Shown: positions 2,351-37,571 of the stretch, in pieces
How the letters are laid out: every line of letters starts with the position of its first letter
Position numbering within the stretch: the first letter of the stretch is position 1
Assembly: GCA_016748015.1 (NCBI GenBank)
Contig: JAAOMT010000009.1
Location: 142,459-206,458 of the forward strand
DNA: 64,000 nucleotides
From: Geosiphon pyriformis uo1
Lineage: Eukaryota > Fungi > Glomeromycota
Reading direction: 5' to 3'
Program-made: the position numbers and the translations under genes
The notes under the pieces: model-generated
Told to the model about the DNA's origin: nothing
Seen by the model: the letters and a program-made list of their open reading frames with translations, nothing else
Database searches by the model: none

Positions 2351-3418
2351 ATGACGTTGGGCAAATACAATTACCTCTCTAGATTAGCCTGTATTATTCT
2401 CTTGGCTACAACATTGAATACAACTGTTCTTGCTACAATAGGACGCAGACTTCAAGTTCGTGGTAATTTCAACGGAAACGGTAACGGTAACAGAAATATT
2501 GGAAACTATAATGGAAATAATAATGGCAACAAGAACAAAGGCTCTTTCAATGGTAACAACAACGGTAATTTCAACTTTGGCTCCTTTAATGGCAACGGCA
2601 ACGGCAATCGCAATGATGGCTGGTTTAATGGAAACAGCAATGGTAACGGCCGTCACTACTACTTAAGATCAAGTTATATGAAACGAGATGGAAATGGAAA
2701 TGGAAACGGAAACGGAAATGTTGGTAGTGAAAATGGAAACGGAAATGGAAACAATGATTCTGGTTCAAACAACGGTAATTTTAACGGCAATAATAATGAC
2801 AGCTCTGGTAATGGAAATTCAAACGGAAACAATAATGTTGGAAGTGGATATGGAAACTTTTACGGCAATGGCAACACTAACGTAGGACAAGTTTCTAACC
2901 AAGACAATGGCAAGATTGATGCAGGACAGGTTCCCACTCAAGGCAGCGCGGGTAGCGGAAACAATAACGGTAATGGTAATATCGGTATTTCCAACAGCAA
3001 CACCAACAGCAACAGTAACAACTATAACAATGGGCCATTATGGGGTTCATACAGAAATTTCAACTACCCATATTACCCTGCATTCTTCTCATATTACCCA
3101 GTATCATATTGGCCATGGGTATTTAGCAGTCATTATACAACTGCAGGTACTTTTCAAAGATGGCTAACTGATCATTATGATGTTGATTTTGCAAAATGGT
3201 CTACTTCTTATCAAAATAATGCTGATTTCCAAAAATGGCTTACCACACATCAATTTGAGCAAAACGATTTTGAAAAATGGGTCCTCGGGTTTTGTAATAT
3301 ACCTTCCATTTCAAAGTTGGAAAGCACCACATGCAATGGATATGAACTTAAGGATTTGAAACTGATTTATGAGATCCTTTATGGGTTTACCGGTTGGTCA
3401 AGTTGGGGCCGAAATTAG
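2351..3418 (+). CDS. Secreted Gly/Asn-repeat precursor protein with dibasic (Kex2-type) sites, 355 aa, intronless (paralog 1)
   Basis: ATG in AAAATG context; hydrophobic N-terminus (LACIILLATTLNTTVLA); RR at 2444-2449 and KR at 2681-2686; 13-aa G-[NS]-[FY]-NGNxNGNxNx repeats; non-repetitive aromatic C-terminal region; TATAAAA at 2268; clear paralog at 12025. Confidence 0.85.
   Translation: MTLGKYNYLSRLACIILLATTLNTTVLATIGRRLQVRGNFNGNGNGNRNIGNYNGNNNGNKNKGSFNGNNNGNFNFGSFNGNGNGNRNDGWFNGNSNGNGRHYYLRSSYMKRDGNGNGNGNGNVGSENGNGNGNNDSGSNNGNFNGNNNDSSGNGNSNGNNNVGSGYGNFYGNGNTNVGQVSNQDNGKIDAGQVPTQGSAGSGNNNGNGNIGISNSNTNSNSNNYNNGPLWGSYRNFNYPYYPAFFSYYPVSYWPWVFSSHYTTAGTFQRWLTDHYDVDFAKWSTSYQNNADFQKWLTTHQFEQNDFEKWVLGFCNIPSISKLESTTCNGYELKDLKLIYEILYGFTGWSSWGRN
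2462..3034 (+). repeat. Coding 39-nt/13-aa Gly-Asn tandem repeat arrays, split by KR
   Basis: GNFNGNGNGNRNI/GNYNGNNNGNKNK/GSFNGNNNGNFNF/GSFNGNGNGNRND/GWFNGNSNGNGRH, then a looser second array after the KR. Confidence 0.9.
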
Positions 3419-9539: not shown

Positions 9540-10563
9540 TACTAGTCAAGATGTATCCAAACCATCCTCAGAAGCGGCTATTGAACACTGGGTAGGATGG
9601 AGCGAAAGGTGTCGCATCATTATGACACAAGATGGTATCATAAAAAAGGGGATTATTAAGACTTATGATGCTTCAAAGAAAACATCCTTTTAATGATGTT
9701 TCGGCTATCTGGAATGAAAGAAAATTTTGCAGAACCATGGTTCGTCTTGGCATAATCTTAAGAGGTTGCTTAAGCTCAGCTCCTACCTACCAAAATCACA
9801 GACGAAACATTGCTTGCGGGAAAAGAAGTTATTAAACGTGATACACACCGAGAGCAAGGTGCAGCAACAGATTATCTTTCTTTTCAATATCGTAAGACAC
9901 TGTATCACAACATAATAATTCGTGCTCAGAATTTTGTCAAGTTGCCTTGGAATCGCTTCTAAGGATAATAAATTTTTTATGCTTTTTTTTAAATTGTTAT
10001 ATCAATATTTGTGCCATTATTTTTAAGGATAAACAACTATGGTCTTCTACTTCGAAAAAAAAAACGTGAAAATAACAGTGGCCCTGTTCATACAGTTTCC
10101 ATTAATTCTGGTATTCCCCTCTAAAGGTGTAGGTGAAATCGGGGAATATAATATTGAACATATTGTTCGTCTTTGCACTTGCACCTATATGGGATAATTG
10201 ATATCACGAAAAGAAAGATTCTCTCAGTCAACATCCAAACGCAAGAAAAAGAAGGCTAGAAGATTCGACAAAGCAGTCTCATGTACGCGAAGAAAAATTA
10301 TGCATTTGCAAAACAAAATCCACAAAATGGCAATTGCATTCTTCATTCATGAATTCGACGTTATCATCATCCTGCCGTTTGATGTTTCTAACATGGTGGA
10401 TCGAAAAACAAGAAAATTACGCGAAAACTGGTCCAAGAAATGCTTTCTTGGGCACATTATTAATTTCGCCAACGCTGAGGAATTCGGAGTGTGTGTCATT
10501 GTCCAGAGTGAGGCTTATATGTCCAAGACTTGTAGCTGGTGTGGTAACGTCAAAGTATCGTAG
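9540..10563 (+). pseudogene. Decayed Fanzor2 (eukaryotic TnpB/IS607-OrfB-like) nuclease gene
   Basis: N-terminal KMYPNHPQKRLL/EHWVGWS (OrfB HTH-like); VSINSG at 10095-10112 (degenerate xDPG RuvC-I); WYSP.KGVGEIG..IVRLC; basic helix; IILPFDVSNMV; EAYMSKTCSWCG. Frameshifted and truncated before RuvC-III. Confidence 0.75.
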
Positions 10564-12024: not shown

Positions 12025-12759
12025 ATGATGGTTAGATTTGCTATTCTTTCAGTAATCGGATTCCTAGCCTTAGTGGCAACTCCTTTCGCTGCCGCTCTAC
12101 CAGAAATTGAAAAGCGCCAGAATTTCAATGGTAATGGTAACGGAAATGGTAATGTCGGCAATTTTAATGGCAACGATAATGGCAATGACAATGCCGGTAG
12201 CTTTAACGGAAATGGTAACGGCAATGACAATTGGGGTTCTTTCAACGGCAACCACAATGGAAATGGAAATGGCTACTGGGGTTGGGGTTGGGGTTGGGGT
12301 TGGCCTTATTATGGTCATGGTCATGGTCATGGTCATTACAAACGTGATTTCAATGGTAATGATAACGGAAATGGTAATATCGGCAATTTTAATGGCAACG
12401 ATAATGGCAATGACAATTGGGGTTCTTTCAACGGCAACCACAATGGAAATGGAAATGGCTACTGGGGTTGGGGTTGGGGTTGGCCTTATGGTCCTTATGG
12501 TCCTTATGGTTCTCATGGTCCTCATGGTCCTCATCATGGTCCTTACAAACGTGATCACAATGGTAATGGTAATGGAAATGGTAATGTCGGCAATTTTAAT
12601 GGCAACGATAATGGCAATGACAATGCCGGTAGCTATAACGGAAATGGTAACGGCAACTACAATTGGGGTTCTTTCAACGGCAACCACAATGGAAATGGAA
12701 ATGGCTACTGGGGTTGGGGTTGGGGTTGGCCTTATGGTCATGGTCATGGTCGTTGGTAA
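12025..12759 (+). CDS. Secreted Kex2-processed repeat precursor (KEP-like), 244 aa, three GN/WG/His modules (paralog 2)
   Basis: First ATG is at 12025 (the ORF track starts at an upstream TTG). Signal peptide MMVRFAILSVIGFLALVATPFAAA, pro-piece LPEIEKR, KR at 12112, 12340 and 12547 separating three homologous modules. Confidence 0.92.
   Translation: MMVRFAILSVIGFLALVATPFAAALPEIEKRQNFNGNGNGNGNVGNFNGNDNGNDNAGSFNGNGNGNDNWGSFNGNHNGNGNGYWGWGWGWGWPYYGHGHGHGHYKRDFNGNDNGNGNIGNFNGNDNGNDNWGSFNGNHNGNGNGYWGWGWGWPYGPYGPYGSHGPHGPHHGPYKRDHNGNGNGNGNVGNFNGNDNGNDNAGSYNGNGNGNYNWGSFNGNHNGNGNGYWGWGWGWPYGHGHGRW
12118..12756 (+). repeat. Nested coding repeats: three modules of about 210 nt, each with 39-nt GN units, (TGGGGT)n and (GGTCAT)n or 9-nt GPY/GPH units
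   Basis: Read directly from the DNA and its translation. Confidence 0.92.
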
Positions 12760-15455
12760 TAGTAACGGGAACAACGATGTGTCATTTAATGATAATAATA
12801 AGCGCAAGGGAAATAAAAGGTGGTTCCACTCTTATTTATCATTGACACACTTACTATAAGAATGTATCAATTTTATTAAGAGAGTGTAGGATTAGATTAT
12901 TTAATAAAAATTTCAGAGCAAATAGATTGTAAATCTTCAAATAATAAAGTCGGAGATTGAATAAGCCAAATTTTTGGGACTAAATATATTTGAAAAATCA
13001 TGAATTTTGATTATTGCCGTAAATTTTTCTTGGCCACATTGGTCCCATTTTTAAAAATAATACTTAACTGATATCGATCAAAAATTATGCAACACCATCT
13101 AATTCTTTATCTCTAAGAATTAGGTGTATGTGAAAATTCAGGGACTCCTATTATAGGTTTATTGTTTTCTGTTGATTAACTAAATCTTTTCTCCTCAACA
13201 GGTGAATTGTTCATGATCATCATTTTGCTAAAGTAAGCAAATTAACTGAAATTCTTCAGGTTTCACTAAATCAAATCGAGTTCCAAGAAGTTGGAGAGGG
13301 TTCCAGCTTTGAAGAAACAATTACCGATATAAAATCAATCTATTGATTAAGATTTTACCTTTATCCTTTACTGGCACTCTTGGTGATTAGAGTAAAATTT
13401 TCAGCAGACTTAAACATTTAATCCTGGGTAAAAATAAATTTTTAATGCTCCAAACCATTTAGATAATTTTCTAAATAAAAGATCCATCTAAACGTCTTTT
13501 ACGACGAGGAAGGATATAATAAAAACTTACATAAAAACATCTCAAAACCAAAATCAAAAAGAGACTAATATTAAAGGCCATTTACTACCCAAATGAAATT
13601 TCAAAATCACAAAACTTTACCACGTAGAGGATTTCTTACTTCCTGAAAAGCGATATATCCCTCGGGAATACTTAACTCTGAACATGTGATTGCGGCCTCA
13701 TAACTTTTAGTATTTACAAAGGTAACAAATCCGTGATCTTGCTGTAAATTTTTATCGTTTGAAAATCAAAGATTTTAATGCAGGAATCAAACGTTTTATA
13801 AATGCCCAGGCGTTAAATACTCACAAAATGATTAATCCACTCAATTTCTTGTACCTGACCGAACATGGTTTCAAGCAAAATTTCAAGTTTTGTCTGCTTC
13901 ATGTGAGGTGGAACTGAGATATAAGCACGCCGACGGCCGACTAGTTTCAATTTCGTTTTTTGAAAAGACCTAAGGTATATTTAAGATTTTTTCTTGAACT
14001 AAAATATGATCTTGATAACCCAAACCATTTGATTTTAAGCCGCTCCAAGGATCTTGTGAGATTCGTGAAATATTCTTGATCTCCTTCTTTGTCACTTCAA
14101 TCTGTTCCCTTGTTGTTTCCAGATCTTTCAAAAGTTTGGTGATTTGTGTATCTTTTACAGAGATGGAATTATCTCGCCTTTCAAGTTCAAGTATGATGCT
14201 CTGCCCATCATTATAACAATTCTTGAGATGATTCATTATGGGAATTATAGTAAAATAAGTTGCGCAAACGGATACGGATCTCGATCGTTTTATCTTAAAT
14301 CAATTCAAAAAAGTGGAAACACCTACTTTGATGAAATCAGGATTTCAAAATGATTTGTTCAAGTATGATTAAGCAATAAGATAGTGTAAACCTCTTTTAG
14401 TAATATGTTTTCCAAATTGGCAAATTATGAAAGACTGCGATATTAAAAATGGTTCATATATAATTAGTAAAATTTTGCTCACACCAAAGGATTGGTTTTC
14501 CTCATAAAAAATATTTTTCAAAATTTCATCAATTAGGAGTCTTCAGTTAAGCAAATTCAAGTTAAAAAGTTTAATTGAAACTTTGATCTATCGCAAAAGG
14601 TACGAACTGCATGATTTAAATTTTTGATATATGCTCCTATTAGCTAATGATGTCAACTCAAAATTTATTTTTTTATCCTTTCCTTTTAAAAATGTGAGTC
14701 TGAGTTCTCTCTGATCCTTAAACAGTTTACATAATATTCAAGAAAGGGTTTGGTTTAGTTAATGGAGAATTTTATTAAATGTCTCTTGTTTCTGTCCATC
14801 AACCAGTCAAACAACTTGGAATTTCCTTCAAAAACTTTGATCACTGGGACGCTCAAGAACATGTCCTCTTCCAAATACATTTACGCGCAAGTTTTCGGCC
14901 TCAAATAAAAGAACCCGTTGAATCACAGAAACAACCTTATTTTTTTTTACTTCATATACATAAACTCTATCAACAATAGCATAGATATCTGAAGTTCTAG
15001 ATTTCCTTATCAAAATTATGTGATCTATGCATTGTTACACCTCTTACCAAGAAAAGATTCTACTTGGACTATGCTTTACTGTGACAGAACAAAATTTTCT
15101 TCCAACTCTTCACCTGGTTCTTGCGGCCCCAATTGGAATTGTTTATAAGTACCTTCATCTAAAAAAAGCACACTTTTATATTGTCTTGATGCGCAGTTTT
15201 GCGACATGGAATGCAGGCACAAGGGCCCGGATTTGCTGCATCCAATTATAAGGGGTAAGATTAGCCAAAATTCTATCAATAAATAATGGCACCAAGTTTT
15301 TTTGGAGACTAGTTTGTTTATTCTCTTCGCAAATAACATTTTCTGCGCATCCAAACAATTCTGCCGTCCCAATATATAATCATCTAAAATATGATATGTA
15401 ATTCTTTCGCTATTACTCTTAATAATCAACTCGCAACGCCGTTACATTGAATTTA

Positions 15456-19338: not shown

Positions 19339-20614
19339 TAGTCTGGTAAGAAAAAAATTGGAAAAATATGAATCTACTAAGATTGCGTTTGATTTAACCA
19401 TTTTTGGTAAGTTTTGTGACGGTAAAAATGGAAACAGAATATTAGGTAAGTGGCTGAGCTCTAAAAACATTTTCTCACATATTAACTAATTGTTTTTTTT
19501 AAAACTTGTCTTTGAAATGCCGACTTCAAAGCAAGAAATGCAATGGCAAGTCGTATTACATTTTTGGAAGCAAGAAATATGAAGGTGAAAGAAATACAGA
19601 ATAAAACAAATATACCCCTTTCTACAATCTATAATATCCTCGAAAAACTCAAAAAAAAAGGAACAATAAAGCATGCGAGTGGTAATGGTCGGCCAAGAAA
19701 AATTATGGGAAATTCTTTGAAAGTATTAGGGCAGATTATTCGTAGAGATTCCTCAGTTTCGTCTAGATATTTAGCAATAAAGTTGGCTAAGAAGGGGATA
19801 AATGTTTTTTATGTTACTATTCAAAACCATTTATTCAACCTTAATTATAAAAAAAGTCTTCCTAGAGCAACTCCAATGCTGACCGAAGAGCATAAGCGAA
19901 AATGTGTAGAATGGGCCAAAAAACACTTGAACGACGATTGAAAAAGAACAGTTTTTACTGACGAAACATCTTTTTAACTTTTTCAAAACACGGTAAAATG
20001 TTGGCATAAAGGTACTCGACCAATTCGTCCTATGCTTAAAGATCGAACAAAAATTCTCGCATGGGGGGTTTCTACGAAAAAGGAAAGACTAGTTTATTCT
20101 GTTATGTTCAAATAATGAATGCTCAATTTTATATAGATATTCTTTGTAACCACTTACCTGAAATTAGAGCAAAGCTGGGGGATAATTGGCGATTCCAACA
20201 AGATAATGACCCCAAGCATACTAGCAAGCTTGCCAAAGAGTTTATTGCTGAGAATACAACTGATTTTTTAGGGTGGCCATCTAATAGTCCCGACTTAAAC
20301 CCAATAGAAAACCTTTGGGCTATTGTTAAAAGAATGTAGAAAAAAGAATGCCTCAAAATCGTACTGAATTAGAGAGATTTATGGGGGAGAGTGGCAAGAT
20401 ATTCCTGAATCTACCTTAATTGGTTTAGTAGGATCAATGAGGCGGCGTTGTGAAATGATAATTGAGACAAATGGTGAAAGAATTTCCTATTAATTATTTT
20501 TAATAAAATTATATGGTATTTGACTTTCGAATAAAAGTTGTTTTATGTAATTTGGTACATTAGTTAAGACATAGTAATTATTTTTATATTTCCAATTTTT
20601 TTCTTACCAGACTG
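19339..20614 (+). mobile_element. Tc1/mariner (DD34E) transposon, about 1.28 kb, full length but inactive
   Basis: TIRs of about 26 bp, (C/T)AGTCTGGTAAGAAAAAAATTGGAAA, at both ends; TA follows the right end, while the left-end TA/C is mutated; encloses a transposase. Confidence 0.9.
19517..20493 (+). pseudogene. Tc1 transposase pseudogene
   Basis: HTH plus GRPRK linker, VFTDE, QQDNDPKH and WPSNSPDLNPIENLW with 34 residues between D and E; stop at 19939 (W codon), further stop and frameshifts. Confidence 0.9.
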
Positions 20615-30264: not shown

Positions 30265-33200
30265 TTATGCTGTCGCAGGCTTGACTATCCTAACAACTAA
30301 ATCACCTGTCGATAATGAATCATTTTTTTGCACTGCCACATACTCAACCTTACCTGAAACAGGTGATGTGAGTACAGTTTCCATTTTCATGGCTGAAAGA
30401 ACACATATTGGGTCACCGACTTTTACGTCTGTTCCCTCTAAATTAGAGGCAAGAGATAATAAAATTGATGAGAAAATTGAAAAGGTACTGGCTTTTTAAA
30501 GGAAATTTGTTCTAATAGGATATTTAAGAATATGATGAAAAAATAAGAACCTGTTGTTCTGACTTCAATCACAACACCAGACATAGGGGCTCCTATTTCA
30601 CCAGGGTTGCTTGGATTTGCTCTTTCACGTTGAACATGATCCACGGCTTGAAATATAAGAGTTAAATATTAAAAAAAATTCACCGGATTTAGTCGATTGA
30701 AACTTAAATTTCATTAAATTTACCAGCATTACGATCATCGATCGCTAGGGCTCGAGCCTCTCCATTTAACTCGAAAAAAACCTCTCTCTTGCCCGTTATG
30801 ACATTTAGAGGACCGGCAGCTAAGAACTTGATCATTAGGGTAACTCCTTCTTCAATCTGAATGCTGACTTCTTCGCCGATTTCAGGCTTCGCTAAAAAGT
30901 AACGTGTAGGAACCACGGAAAGATCACCATATTGATCAACTTTTTCTCGATATTCAGCGAAAACCTGCGGGTACATCGCGGCAGAGGATACATCAACATC
31001 ACGAATGCTACGTCCGTATTTTTGTGTTAATTCGACTTTAAGTTTAAACAGATCCAACGGTTTCATGGAGGCTCCAGGTCTTCCATCTATACGTGGAAGA
31101 TCACGAATAATCTATAAAAAAATTATGTATGATCATCTGCAAAAATATCTAAAAGGAACAAGATTATAACGAAATCTTGTTTCTCTGAACATCAGCTGTT
31201 AAAATAAATTGAAAATACATCAGATCGAAGTGGTTCTGGGAATCCTCCATAAGGCTGCCCTAGGTGCCCTTGAAAAAATTCTACCACTGATACAGGGAAC
31301 GATAACGTCTTTGCTTTTTGAATGACCTATTTGAAAATTTTGTTTTAATAAAATTTACATAAATGAGAGACAATCAACAAATAGTTTTGTACTTACATCA
31401 AAATATGTCAACTTATTTGATACCATAAATTGAGCAAGATCGCCAACAACTTTAGAGCTCGGCGTGACTTTTACAATATCTCCGCATAATTTATTGGCCT
31501 CTACATAAGCTCTCTTGATCTCTTTCCACATCTGTCCAAGGCCGAGTTGTTGCGCTTGAAACATGAGGTTGGTGTATTGACCCCCAGGCATTTCATGTTC
31601 ATAAACGGACGAGTCAGCAGCTAAAACGCCAGATTCAAAACAACTGTAAAGCATGCGAACTTGCTCCCAATATCCATTTAAGGCATGGACATCTTCCAAT
31701 CGGATGCCGGTTCCAAGATTCGTATTTTCAAGAGCAGAGACAACAGCACCCATCGATGGCTGGGATGTAATACCAGACATACCTTGATCGCAAAAAAATA
31801 ATAGTATCATAAGTATCGGTTTCTTATTTCTCCTCAATACATCACCCTTAGATAACAAATTTATAAACTTACTATCTATAGCCAAATCAATAATATCAGC
31901 ACCAGCAGCGGCAGCGGCGAGCATACTGGCTACACCCGTTCCGGCTGTATCATGGGTATGGACATGTATTGGTAAATCAGGCCAACGACTCCTAATGGCA
32001 CCAACAAGGATTTTCGCAGCCTCAGGTTTTAATAATCCAGCCATATCTTTGATTGCCAGGACGTGAATTCCTTCATTGATTAATTCTTGCGTCAAATTCA
32101 TATAATAGTCAAGGTTATGTTTCTTTTTATTAGGGTTGGATAGATCGCCTGTATAACATATAGCCGCCTCGACAACACCACCCGCTTTCTTGACAGCGTC
32201 AATCCCAAGACGCATGTTTTCTATATAATTGAGGGAATCAAATATACGAAAAATGTCCATTCCAGTGTCTTTAGCTTTTTTACAAAAATCATATATTATA
32301 TTATCTGGGTAGGATGTATAGCCGACAGCATTGGCACCTCTTAGCAACATTTGAAAGGGAATGTTTGGCACCAAAGCACGCATTTTTGCCTAAGTTTTAA
32401 ATTATTAATAAAGCTTGACAGTTAATGTTTTTGATTTGAACTTCCTTAAGGGCCTACCAAACGATCCCAAGGATCTTCATACAAAAATCGCATTGCAACA
32501 TCAAATGTTGCTCCACCCCAATTTTCTAAAGCATATGCATTTGCAAGCCCATGAGCAGTTTGTGGAGCGATATTTAAGAGATCTGGAGATTTCGATAATC
32601 ATTAGAATGGGGGGAAAATCAGAGATTGAAACTCACCATTTCTCATACCTATTGTTCTTACTCTAGTTGCCAATAAACTTTGATGTGCATCTCTCCAAGT
32701 GGTATCCATAATAAGGACGCCATTATATCGACGCACTGCTTTGGCAAAAGCTTCGGGACCTTGTTCAATTAGAAGATGCCGCCATCCATGAGTGGGAGGA
32801 TGCCGAATATCTACTGGTTCTGGCCCGGCCAATGAACGGATCATTGGTAGGAGAATGGATTGTTTAAAGTTTGGCTCACCCTGTCAAGAAAGTTTGTATA
32901 ACTGAAATTTAAGAAATCCGAGGACACCAAATTAAAGCAATTTGGTTGAATTACATCAACCCGCATCAAAGCTTTGACTCACAATCTGTCCTTTGATACT
33001 GCTACCATTGACTACTAAATCACCTAAATATTTGAGGATTTTTTGCGCTCGATTTTTACTCCCCACTAATTTAAACAAATCTGGCGTATCATCAATAAAC
33101 GTCGTCCATGTCCTTCCAGTCAAAAATATTTCATGTGTTAATAATCTCTGTAGAAAAGGTAAATTTGTTTTGACTCCACGAATTCTGAATTCTACTAATG

Positions 33201-34978
33201 CCCGAACCATTTTACGGCGTGCTACTTCAAAGCTGCTTCCTCGACAAGTAACTTTAACAAGTAGGGAATCATAATGAGGGGTAATTACAGAACCAGCGTA
33301 TCCAGAACTACCATCGAGGCGTACACCATTTCCACCAGAGGAGCGGTAGACTTCGATCTTGCCTGTGTCGGGTTGGAAATTTTGTGCAGGGTCTTCAGTA
33401 GTCACTCTACATTGAATTGCAGCACCTCTTATTTCAATTGTATCCTGTGAAAGATCAAGCTGGTGCAGAAGAGAGCCTGCTGCGATTTGGATTTGTGCTG
33501 CAACTATATCGATACCGGTAATTTCCTCTGAGAAAAGAAAATTGACAATAGTCAGTTTTGATTTTTTGAATTGCTATTTTAAAATTCAACAGAGTTTTTC
33601 ATTAACCTGTTATAGTATGCTCAACTTGAATTCGAGGATTTATTTCAATAAAATAATGTTTATCTTGTTGATCTACAAGAAATTCTGCTGTCCCCGCGTT
33701 GCGATAATTAACAGCTTTGGCAAGTTTGATGGCATCGGCTAGGATAGCATCTCGAATAGAAGTCTGAGATGTGTATTTTTATATAAGTCCGAATAAGTCT
33801 ATGATATTTATTCAATAATTTAACAATTGACAAGATTACCTCAAGCTCCATAGCTGGCGCTACCTCTACTACTTTCTGATGTCTCCTTTGAACAGAGCAA
33901 TCACGCTCGAACAAATGTATCACATTACCCGCATTATCTGCCAACAGCTGAACCTCAATATGACGCGGTTTGTCCAAAAATCGTTCAATAAATACAGACC
34001 CATCGCCAAATGCGGCGAGAGCTTCTGACTTGGAACGTTCGAAAGAATCAGCAAGCGAAGTTTGATCACGAACCACACGCATGCCACGCCCGCCTCCACC
34101 CATCGCGGCCTTGATAATGACAGGGAGCCCGTGTTTAGCTATAAATGCTTCAGCCTCAGCGATGGTAGATACGGGTCCAGGGGTACCGGGCACTACAGGT
34201 ACTCCGCATTCAATTGCTTTGGATACAATTGAACTTTTATTTAGTAATTTATCACTGGAAATAATCGTATATAAAGTATAGCTATAATTTCTATTTGATA
34301 GAATAATCCCGAGAGAAATAATTAATGAGGGTCATTTGGTCAGTGCAATTATGACGGCAATTCTATTGCAGGGATCATACCATGGGTTCAGCAGTTTTTC
34401 TGTCCCGTAATATTTAGAACTCGAAAGGTAGGATAATAATTTATTGAAATAAACTTACCAATTTCTCTGGCTTTTGTTTTATCCCCCATTTTTTCAATAA
34501 CTTCAGGGGTAGGACCAACGAAAGCTATCCCAGCGGCCTCTACTTTTCGAGCGAACTCAGCATTCTCACTAAGAAATCCATACCCGGGGTGAATCATGGA
34601 AACACCGCGAAGTCTTGCGACACGAATAATTTCGTCTTGATCAAGATATGCACCAACCGGAGTATGTTTTCCGTGTTCACCTATTTGATAGGCTTCGTCA
34701 GCTTTGTAACGGTGCATTGATAATCGGTCTTCGAAACTGAAAACGGCAACTGTCTTCATCGAAAGTTCATGCGCTGTACGAAACACGCGAATTGCTATTT
34801 CCTGTTGACGCGAGCCATGCGAACTGTTATTAATTTCCCAAGTTTTTCTCAAATAACCTTTTAAAAGAAAATTCCCTCTATATCTTACCCCACGATTAGC
34901 CACCATTAGTTTTTGCAGGTGCCCTAATACTTGGCTATTTCGGCGAATAGTGTCAACCGAATGCTCATGATCCGTCAT
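30265..34978 (-). CDS. PYC: Pyruvate carboxylase, 13 exons and 12 GT-AG introns
   Basis: Biotin carboxylase motifs ([39 protein letters not shown]), carboxyltransferase motifs ([29 protein letters not shown]) and biotin carrier SAMKME. Every junction I traced restores the frame; stop at 30265-30267. Confidence 0.97.
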
Positions 34979-35331: not shown

Positions 35332-37571
35332 TCAAGTGATTGGGTCAAATTTTCTATCAATAAACGAGGTTATCTGAGGGTTCTGTTTTTTTTCTGTGCT
35401 AATACGCAAGCGTGGCCAATCATCAGGAGCCTTCTGAACACCTAGATTTTTATCAAGTATTTTATTGATCTCCCACATCAAAATGCTGCCTGCAGATGAG
35501 ATGTCCATAATACCATCAACTTCAGTTGTTGAGATCCCAACTTTCATTGCTTGCAATGCAAATTCTGGAATATGAGCAATTCTGCGACTCAAATAGAGAG
35601 CGATGCGTGAGGGAAGGGCACCAGTATACTCTTTACGAAAGGAAGAAGTCCAAAAAAGCAAATTAGTGCCCTTTATGATGGATGTTGATTTATTTTTTAT
35701 TTCTGGTGGAATGACCCCAGCAGTAAGAAGAGATAATTCGTTTTGTTCTAAAAAGGTCAAAAGATCTTCATGATTTCCGTATACACATGGCCATGTAAGC
35801 GAATGGAACCCAGAAGAGCGCATTACAAAATCATTATAAATATCGTTCGTTCTAGGTCCCATAAAGGACCCCTGCCATCCAAAAGCTTTTGCACTACGAA
35901 TCAACATGCCAAAATCTATGGCCTCGTTTGCACTGTCCAGTACCAGCAACCTATTAATCTCGTTTTTTTCAGGCATTTGAATAACAGGAAATGGAACCTC
36001 CGCAAAGATCTCATGACGATCAGGTTTAGCGGCGCTTCCTAAAATCTTGCGTGCCATATCAATACTTGCTATGTAATAATTTTCCGCCTTAATGAGTTGT
36101 GGATTTTCAATATAATCTAAAGCTGGAGATTGAATTTCGTATTTCGACTTGGGTTTATCAGGAGCGTGAATAATCAGACTTTTGATTGGAAAATTTTTCA
36201 AAGCTAAATCTCGCACATTTACTTCGTTTTGGACAATAACCAATTTTTGCTGATGCCGATAGGCTTTATCTTCAACAAGTTTTTCAAGGTGCATTATGAT
36301 AGGATCTGTTATTCCATGAATGCGTGTCAACATTTTGGGCCACTCATGCTTGTATTGAAATTTTTCTCTATAAGCTTCTCTTTCTGCTGCCTCACGAACT
36401 TTAGCCATTTGTTCTTCATGAGTTAGTGGCCTTCGTATGGGAAAGGTACGACGGGAGCTTTGGTCAGTTCTGTCATGTCGAGGAAAGCTATGTCTAAAAG
36501 AAGGAGAATGAGAGTTATAGGTTTCTTGTGGTTTTTTCTGCTTGATAAAAAGATGAGTTTCATCATATCGTTTGTCCACACGCTCCTTTCGATCATCTCC
36601 AGCAAGTGTCGGAATCATAGAGTTTGTTAAAGATAATTGCCTAGATCGAGAGTTGTACTTGTTATGGTTATGTTGCTTGTAATACATATCATATTTTGGC
36701 TTACTGCCTCTAGCTCCCAAATAATTGACGATATGCTCCCCTTCAACCTTAGGATAAGCGCTTTCGGATACTGGACGATAAGCATTGATAAAAGAGTTAT
36801 TAAATTGATTTGTTTTGGGCCGAGTATTTCGAGAATCAGGATAAACTCCTTTCGGGTCTGTATTGTATTTCAGTACATTATTGGTATGAGGTTTTTGATC
36901 ATATTCTTTATGAGAAGAGTTAAGGTGTCGACCTTGGGGACGCTGGTATTCTGGATCGGGAGGATTAAAATATAGGGGTTTTGTGGCTGAAATAATAGAA
37001 GACAAGTGTGGCTACACGTTAACAAAAAAAATATATAGGTTTTATATCATTTCATTGACTTGAGAATTAAAACCTTGAAATCGATATTCTCCCCAACCCT
37101 ACCTCTAAATTTAAGGCCATTACTAACAAAGTTTTCTTCAGACAAGGTGTCAAACTTTTCAGAGCTAAACTCCATATTATTCCAAGATGCCACTTTTTGA
37201 GGGATTCCATTGTTAAAACTTTTGAGCCGTGGTTGAAGATTCAAATTTCTATAATGGAAGTTTCTCTGTGGGTCACTTCTATATTGACTTCTCTGCTCAC
37301 GATAGTTCTCTTCGCTTTTAAAAAAAATTGGAGTATTTTCTCGATAATTACGCTCTCGTGCATGGTTGGCAGGTGAATCTCTAAACGATCCTCTTTCAAC
37401 GTTATCTTGACTTGAATTTTTGGCCTGTAATTTTCCCCCACTTCTACGCTCGGGAACATAGAAGACTCTTTCCTCAAAATGCTTATGGTTTCCTATATGA
37501 AAGAATCTCAGAAATATATGTTTCTTGTAGGTTTTCACTTCGAAAGGTATTTGTGCTTGCCTTCGTAGCAT
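35332..37571 (-). CDS. SpoU/TrmH (SPOUT) RNA methyltransferase-fold protein, MRM3/RNMTL1-like, probably mitochondrial, 725 aa; exons 37571-37074 and 37011-35332
   Basis: A phase-0 62-nt GT-AG intron joins the two ORFs. Arg-rich presequence-like N-terminus. LLVLDSANEAIDFGMLIRSAKAFGW, DIYNDFVMRSS and IMDISSAGSILMWE resemble SpoU motifs. Confidence 0.75.

Follow-up and report, generated by a model that had tools for sequence, protein, structure and literature searches.

A candidate Kex2-processed gene for Asn/Gly-repeat peptides with Trp/Gly cores and His-rich tails in Geosiphon pyriformis

A 64,000 nt stretch of the Geosiphon pyriformis uo1 genome (contig JAAOMT010000009.1, positions 142,459 to 206,458; hereafter the window) contains, at 12025-12759 on the forward strand, an uninterrupted single-exon open-reading frame (ORF) of 244 codons and a stop, and the questions it raises are whether this is a genuine gene and what its repetitive product would do. 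Geosiphon is the only fungus known to house cyanobacteria, and it is used as a model of how arbuscular mycorrhiza arose. We consider it very probable that the ORF is a real, single-exon G. pyriformis gene encoding a secreted Kex2-processed repeat protein (KEP) of the Asn/Gly (GN) 13-mer family, members of which are also referred to as GN-rich intrinsically disordered proteins (IDPs) or RIC. The gene is apparently unannotated, as its product is absent from the protein collections whilst other Geosiphon paralogs (P0021, P0022 and P0026, the ORFs of L033, L036 and L046) are present in them. Both the precursor class and the GN family are already known; what is new here is the Trp/Gly and His-rich ends which each repeat module carries.

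The coding sequence (12025..12759, start ATG in an A-rich context) was taken from the ORF listing and its translation, and all features given in this paragraph lie on the forward strand. A predicted signal peptide covers residues 1-24 (12025..12096) and consists of MMVR, a 14-residue hydrophobic core and AAA, after which the -3/-1 rule would place the cleavage point; a helix at residues 2-17 is the sole confident part of the AlphaFold2 model of the precursor. The pro-piece LPEIEKR (12097..12117), with the first Kex2 site at its end, completes residues 1-31 and is followed by three modules bounded by YKR. Peptide 1 (12118-12339, 74 aa, four 13-mers) is composed of a GN block of four 13-residue Asn/Gly units with Gln first (12118..12273), the aromatic core Y(WG)4WPY (12274..12309, a TGGGGT x4.5 microsatellite) and the tail YGHGHGHGHY (12310..12339, an ATGGTC x4.3 microsatellite), and is separated from the next module by the predicted Lys-Arg processing site 2 (YKR followed by D, 12340..12345). 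Peptide 2 (12346-12546, 67 aa, three 13-mers) has a GN block of three 13-residue units (12346..12459), the core Y(WG)3WPY (12460..12489) and the tail GPYGPYGSHGPHGPHHGPY (12490..12546, a CCTTATGGT x6.6 microsatellite), and ends at the predicted Lys-Arg site 3 (again YKR followed by D, 12547..12552). Peptide 3 (12553-12756, 68 aa, four 13-mers) comprises four 13-residue units (12553..12705), a second Y(WG)3WPY core (12706..12735) and the short tail GHGHGRW (12736..12756), with the stop codon directly after it. The initial annotation of this locus had predicted three such peptides, and its coordinates and lengths match the translation of 12025-12756 exactly; the layout it described, GN 13-mers followed by Y(WG)3-4WPY and a His/Gly/Pro tail, is present in all three modules. 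It was also right that the mature peptides (KR removed) contain no Cys, Leu or Lys and that peptide 1 begins with Gln; Met, Thr and Glu are absent as well, the single Arg lies in peptide 3, and Gly plus Asn make up 54-63% of each peptide. The strict pattern xNGNxNGNxNxGx occurs as eight units in the precursor, against a mean of 0.01 and a maximum of 1 in 2000 shuffles, and three further terminal GN units stand in register with these eight. Tandem Repeats Finder recovered a 39 nt period besides the three microsatellites.

Le Marquer et al. (2019, PMC6339444) recognise KEPs by a signal peptide, the lack of a membrane segment, at least four fragments on cutting at KR or RR with at least three similar repeats, and a share of 15% or more of the protein taken up by these repeats. 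In the Geosiphon precursor the predicted N-terminal signal peptide is followed by a hydrophilic remainder (grand average of hydropathy about -1.5 to -1.65) without a transmembrane segment. In-silico cutting at its three KR sites (EKR and two YKR) gives four fragments, the pro-piece and three modules which share identical DNA blocks, and the repeats account for 213 of the 244 residues (>85%). A kexin gene is present in the genome: Peptidase_S8 exons at C608:605309-606087 on the reverse strand (52-53 bits with the P domain) lie directly upstream of, and adjoin, a P_proprotein domain at C608 604583-604753 on the same strand. The precursor-and-cleavage architecture put forward in the initial annotation is thus supported: the signal peptide, EKR pro-site and KR-separated repeats agree with KEPs in every sequence feature that defines them. 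We infer that the precursor, when expressed, would lose its signal peptide in the secretory pathway, that kexin would cut after the EKR and the two YKR sites, and that a Kex1-type carboxypeptidase would trim the Lys-Arg to release three peptides of 67-74 residues (7.2-7.9 kDa), the first with an N-terminal Gln able to cyclise.

Diffusible signalling peptides, pheromone- or effector-like, have been proposed as the products of many KEPs, and the architecture of the Geosiphon precursor is that of alpha-factor-type pheromones and other KEP peptides (PMC6339444). A signalling role is nevertheless very improbable here, as the peptides are 67-74 residues of low complexity and not short defined ligands, no STE13-type XA/XP dipeptides follow the KR sites, the three peptides differ exactly in their non-repeat part, and no conserved orthologues were found with phmmer among 1.84 billion representative proteins. 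We also considered a dikaritin-type (ustiloxin-like) precursor of ribosomally synthesised and post-translationally modified peptides, which is unlikely given that no modifying enzyme lies within about 10 kb and the 'cores' would be 67-74 aa long; UstYa/DUF3328 (PF11807) had no match in the genome, and the control genomes likewise gave none.

The family to which the gene belongs is large. In the 128.3 Mb assembly (792 contigs) the precursor protein matches at least 61 places, with E-values to paralogs of 3e-16 to 1e-4, and the reading frame of its GN repeats is the frame common to these matches. The best match of one paralog query, the NCBI G. pyriformis protein G9A89_006378, maps back to contig C580 of the assembly, exon for exon, with 99% identity. 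About 38 distinct ORFs were taken from 35 loci, nearly all with a signal peptide; KR dipeptides occur in about half of them, and in most of those EKR directly precedes the first GN 13-mer (as IEKR, NEKR, SEKR, LEKR or YEKR). The position profile of the 13-mer is the same in paralogs and precursor, and 31 segments from paralogs and bacteria can be aligned with the precursor 13-mers in register. At the variable positions 5 and 9 the precursor has Asp or Gly where the paralogs have mostly Asn, which makes its GN block acidic. At least five members are loosely clustered on the contig, at 130.9, 144.8 (window 2351-3418), 154.5 (the precursor gene), 256-257 and 288 kb. The member at window 2351-3418 (forward strand; 'paralog 1') encodes 355 aa with a signal peptide, GN 13-mers, one KR site and a non-repeat, Trp/Tyr/Phe-rich C-terminal domain of ~130 aa without a Pfam match.

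Roughly the other half of the family, without KR sites, has the look of surface proteins and includes long members with Ser/Thr-rich linkers (L002, 709 aa). As cleavage of the precursor is a prediction, these relatives raise the alternative that it stays intact as a single 22 kDa GN-rich wall protein with three aromatic/His patches. We judge this highly unlikely, because KR marks every module boundary and immediately precedes the first repeat, in this gene as in the family at large, and because the genome contains a kexin gene.

In the paralogs the GN arrays usually end in one to a few aromatics before KR, such as GWWW (ten times in one gene), RPSYWY, SYWY, NNY and NNW, and also in FNH. Judged from the translated repeats, the order GN block, aromatic end, KR is therefore a theme of the family. 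Conservation of block order in homologues had been named in the initial annotation as one of the points on which its peptide model would stand or fall, and the order proves to be only loosely conserved: aromatic ends after GN repeats recur in many paralogs, but neither the paralogs nor the other homologues have the (WG)n run or the His/Gly/Pro tails. The closest analogue in the genome of a GN block plus Trp end is L004 (C773:415890-419249, reverse strand), a 490-aa family member with 19 KR sites whose predicted products are about ten 30-residue peptides, each of two GN 13-mers ending in GWWW, with DPQEY/DPLLY spacer peptides between them.

The tails are thus the part of the precursor which sets it apart, and we looked for them at several scales. 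Within the genome none of the ~38 paralogs carries the (WG)n run or the His/Gly/Pro tails; other WGWGWGW-coding sites are short non-coding microsatellites, a GHGHGHG-coding run occurs in this gene only, and a GPYGPYG-coding run is unique, the one other match being at control level. All 21 phmmer matches among the 1.84 billion representative proteins fell in the GN block (residues 7-86 or 173-226 of the query); the tails had none. Word searches of 5.8 billion protein clusters returned only GN-block matches with the whole protein and only a GN match with residues 80-176, which span the tails. The exact gene DNA was not found in the JGI metagenomes, and no relevant paper on a WGWGWG peptide motif came up in the literature search. 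At the DNA level the last 13-mer and the WG core are identical across the three modules over about 70 nt, synonymous sites included, and the tails consist of 6- and 9-nt microsatellites with few or no imperfections, from which we take the tails to be young slippage products on a recently duplicated or homogenised module. They would have arisen recently, by slippage of these microsatellites on an ordinary family member. Just past the stop, one base out of frame, window 12755-12823 (forward strand) would encode a short GN-like stretch ending in KR, which reads GNSNGNNDVSFNDNNKR and then KGNKRW. The ancestral gene may have extended further at its 3' end, this stretch being what was left after a frameshift in the His/Gly microsatellite.

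Such an origin invites the explanation that the gene is simply a young, neutral or decaying family member, whose module 3' ends grew by slippage, which has little or no expression and whose tails have no selected function. Its microsatellite tails are found in no orthologue or paralog, purifying selection cannot be read from module copies which are identical at synonymous sites, the gene is neither annotated nor on record, an out-of-frame GN-like relic follows the stop, and transposon fragments lie nearby. We nonetheless hold a neutral or decaying gene to be decidedly unlikely, as the frame is open across 244 codons in a region of 30-36% GC, the signal peptide, the pro-site and both internal KR sites are intact, all three slippage-prone tails are in frame, and the exact core YWGWGWGWPY is found again, between comparable Gly/His/Tyr flanks, in nine unrelated bacterial ORFs.

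These bacterial ORFs came from a search with a degenerate DNA pattern for YWGWGWGWPY, for which we estimate a chance expectation well below 0.1, and which returned nine JGI metagenome contigs (L058-L066) of GC 0.47-0.72. As the proteins were found by searching for the motif itself, only their context is independent evidence: each of the nine cores lies inside an ORF and is flanked by Gly/His-rich and Tyr/Gly/Pro-rich segments, most of the complete ORFs have a signal-peptide-like N-terminus, and three have C-terminal PEGA domains. One falls among unnamed Acidobacteriota-type clusters in the ESM Atlas, and no Pfam family covers the PYWGWGWGWPY motif. The recurrence of the exact core with similar flanks in nine unrelated bacterial ORFs suggests that the motif has a use. 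WG repeats are also familiar as Argonaute-binding 'hooks', an idea we set aside, as the hook motifs are spaced out along cytosolic proteins that are disordered, and there is no hint here that the peptides are delivered into host cells.

The GN block too has bacterial counterparts. Outside Geosiphon most GN-block matches look bacterial, and two were traced, to a Rhodopila metagenome-assembled genome (MAG; P0002) and to a JGI soil metagenome contig (P0001). In the bacterial proteins a signal peptide is followed by the motif L[ST]D.QL....AG, the same first unit as in the fungal precursor, NGNGNGNGN[VI]G, and further 13-mers, which are in register with the fungal peptides and share their position profile. 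In the Rhodopila and soil contigs (L052:5059-8290 and L053:5289-8031) the GN gene heads a run of three GN-repeat genes, a stand-alone Peptidase_C39 gene divergently adjoins the run (47 and 45 bits), GerE-type regulators lie nearby, and one of the two contigs also has an outer-membrane-barrel-like gene. A C39 peptidase therefore stands beside the GN operon in two of the three bacterial loci examined, with operons of two to four GN genes. At the third, in Mesorhizobium loti UFLA 01-765 (LPWA01000105.1, L054:3138-4776), three tandem secreted GN-type genes lie by a NarL-type histidine kinase/response regulator pair, and no C39 gene was found in the roughly 3 kb scanned upstream; this cultured organism would allow the bacterial GN module to be studied directly. 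The pre-repeat motif resembles a double-glycine leader, the type of substrate which C39 peptidases cleave, and so bacteria and fungus appear to release a product starting at the first GN unit by means of different proteases. The bacterial GN proteins that were scanned against Pfam (E up to 0.1) gave no match, and NCBIfam gave only a stray sub-threshold match, to P0035. By analogy, the layout of these operons, apparently undescribed, resembles that of functional-amyloid (Fap-type) systems. As far as their sequences can tell, the GN 13-mer and the Trp/Gly core are thus both recurrent but uncharacterised elements of secreted proteins.

Whether the GN block folds was addressed by modelling. The initial annotation had pictured it as a solenoid, and this is unsupported, as both AlphaFold2 runs gave low-confidence disorder: the full precursor as a single sequence reached a mean pLDDT (predicted local distance difference test) of 38.6 with a helix in the signal peptide only, and peptide 1, modelled from an alignment of 32 rows that brought in GN segments of paralogs and bacteria, reached 35.3 with no secondary structure. 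The strict periodicity of the units is compatible with order which would appear only on assembly. The precursor had no match in Pfam (E up to 1), NCBIfam (E up to 0.1), PDB sequences (E up to 10) or the ESM Atlas features.

The peptides have computed isoelectric points of 5.5-6.0 and a net charge of +2 to +3 at pH 4.5 and -2 to -4 at pH 7; within them the GN blocks carry -3 to -4 at pH 7, and the tails about +3 to +4 at pH 5 and about 0 to +1 at pH 7. With an acidic GN block at one end and a cationic His tail at the other, each peptide is a dipole around pH 5-6, and its ends could pair between molecules. Of the variable tail, described earlier as metal- or pH-responsive, the pH part fits this calculation. 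Each peptide has four to five His, clustered as HGHGHGH or HGPHGPHH, of which the tail of peptide 3 keeps two, and His/Gly tracts bind Cu, Zn and Ni; the peptides might accordingly be mainly extracellular binders or buffers of Zn, Cu or Ni, the remainder serving as a soluble carrier. We think this improbable: peptide 3 has just two His in its tail, the tails are not conserved, and within about 10 kb of the gene there is none for a transporter or for uptake. The proposal also overlaps with a self-associating material and does not exclude one.

Trp makes up 7-9% of each peptide in one clustered block with the clustered His beside it, and the net positive charge at pH 4.5 would suit membrane-active antimicrobial or symbiont-controlling peptides, whose Trp/Gly core would enter the interface of the membrane while acidic compartments would render the His tail cationic; possible targets are the Nostoc endosymbiont or soil competitors. 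Host peptide families control symbionts in other endosymbioses, and the Gly/His-rich shepherins and the Gly/Tyr/Trp-rich NLP/CNC peptides of nematodes are likewise made from multi-peptide precursors. The fungus houses bacteria and secretes this large GN family, which diverges fast and whose name, RIC, refers to symbiosis with cyanobacteria (PMC8786786). We take this seriously but regard it as unlikely, since the peptides are net anionic at neutral pH with no Lys and almost no Arg, and two thirds of each is a hydrophilic GN array which would be superfluous for membrane activity. GN-rich secreted IDPs, some of them glycosylphosphatidylinositol (GPI)-anchored, are moreover found in Paraglomus and Ambispora (Schultz et al. 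2022, PMC8786786), hosts of no cyanobacteria, and the Pfam, phmmer, ESM Atlas and PDB searches showed no similarity to known antimicrobial peptide families.

We favour, tentatively and with a probability of roughly 0.35-0.4, the reading that the gene supplies self-associating peptides of the wall or matrix whose association is switched by pH or metal. Four observations lead us to it: members of surface type, long, uncleaved and GPI-anchored, occur in the family; the bacterial operons are laid out much like fibre systems; at neutral pH the peptides carry a net negative charge, which classical antimicrobial peptides do not; and their ends are charge-complementary. Each peptide would be a spacer-and-sticker unit of a material in the cell wall or outside the cell, its GN block, acidic and hydrophilic, acting as spacer and possibly as stacking part, and the Y(WG)nWPY core with the His/Tyr/Gly/Pro tail acting as stickers. 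Below about pH 6 the cationic His tail would pair with the acidic GN block of a neighbour, whereas near neutral pH, or with Zn, Cu or Ni, His-Tyr and aromatic contacts would take over, and in this way association could be switched by pH or by metal.

Several points weigh against a wall or matrix material. The exact product is on record in none of the protein collections, and the gene may be silent. The out-of-frame GN-like stretch behind it could mean that its 3' end was cut short recently. AlphaFold2 predicts disorder whether or not the family alignment is supplied and so lends no computed support to an ordered stacking core. The tails, unique, microsatellite-built and without conservation, could be neutral expansions. 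Trp-rich segments are typical of membrane-active peptides too. Finally, the link from the bacterial operons to amyloids is by analogy only, without a Pfam match. A more ambitious version of the wall/matrix proposal, which we rate as rather unlikely, is that these are natural block-copolymer peptides joining two self-assembly modules each found separately in secreted proteins of bacteria: the GN array, which a C39 peptidase there apparently frees from double-glycine-type leaders, and the aromatic core with His/Tyr/Gly flanks. On the hyphal wall or where the fungus meets Nostoc, they would assemble into condensates or fibres in response to pH or metal, and bacteria and early Glomeromycotina would have the GN module in common through descent or gene transfer.

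The surroundings of the gene are those of a fungal chromosome. The window is AT-rich (~30% GC), and its retrotransposon and transposase fragments and intron-split housekeeping genes mark the DNA as eukaryotic. Two mobile-element remnants lie around the gene, at window 10198-10563 and 19543-19941 (both forward strand); a weak Cas12f1-like/TnpB zinc-ribbon match of 20 bits, below cut-off, suggests a Fanzor/TnpB-type remnant near the gene, and a Tc1/mariner-type transposase helix-turn-helix fragment near it scored 46 bits. Farther along, an intron-split pyruvate-carboxylase-like gene, judged from ORF translations, occupies window 31355-34978 (reverse strand), and at 35332-37005 (reverse strand) an ORF of 557 aa matches SpoU methylase weakly, its 23.6 bits falling under the cut-off; as these are ordinary housekeeping genes, they confirm the fungal chromosomal context.

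The gene offers a practical entry point to the role of its family, as the Trp and His blocks give clear and cheap predictions (pH- or metal-triggered association, chitin or membrane binding), and the GN 13-mer and Trp/Gly core point to two undescribed, widespread low-complexity modules which are open to study in tractable bacteria.

Among known systems, the precursor is like other KEPs in its signal peptide, short pro-region, three or more near-identical KR-separated repeats forming most of the protein, and the kexin in its genome (PMC6339444). It differs from the classical ones, whose peptides are roughly 10-30 aa, in its low-complexity products of 67-74 aa, in the lack of a STE13 signature and in the different tail on each repeat. 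With the GN-rich IDPs and RIC1-3 of the same organism (PMC8786786; Hoffrichter 2018 thesis) it shares an endoplasmic reticulum signal, very high Gly plus Asn and KR sites, and it has sequence similarity to the family members in the genome. All three Geosiphon RIC proteins have KR sites, and the ORFs of RIC2 and RIC3 are 456 and 470 aa long (PMC8786786). The precursor 13-mer is that of Geosiphon paralogs whose 434-503 aa resemble these sizes, whilst the precursor itself, at 244 aa, is set apart by its length from the three named RIC cDNAs (MH580277-9), and its Trp/Gly and His/Gly/Pro/Tyr blocks occur in no examined family member.

Squid-beak GHGxY peptides coacervate on pH increase via His-Tyr hydrogen bonds and Tyr stacking, and squid-beak histidine-rich proteins, which infiltrate chitin, and HBpep have the same His/Gly/Tyr(/Pro) grammar as the Geosiphon tails (PMC10766971). 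The resemblance is one of composition only: there is no homology, single GHGHY or HHGPY-like ends and HG and GP[YH] repeats take the place of tandem GHGxY pentarepeats, each peptide has just one or two GHGxY-like units, and the Geosiphon peptides include a Trp core and an acidic GN block as well.

The bacterial PYWGWGWGWPY proteins share with the precursor the identical 10-residue core and its Gly/His- and Tyr/Gly/Pro-rich low-complexity flanks, but have one core per protein and neither GN repeats nor KR processing. The bacterial GN proteins of the Rhodopila MAG, M. loti and the soil metagenomes have in common with it the xNGNxNGNxN-hydrophobic-G-x 13-mer, a first unit placed right after the processing site and secretion; they lack aromatic or His tails, and their processing is apparently of the double-glycine/C39 type instead of Kex2. 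Compared with the functional amyloids, curli CsgA and Pseudomonas Fap, the GN repeat is shorter (13 versus about 19-23 residues) and has no Pfam match, the curlin repeat included. What unites them is secretion of Asn/Gln/Gly-rich imperfect repeats and, for the bacterial GN operons, the layout of C39 peptidase and outer-membrane barrel which Fap systems also have.

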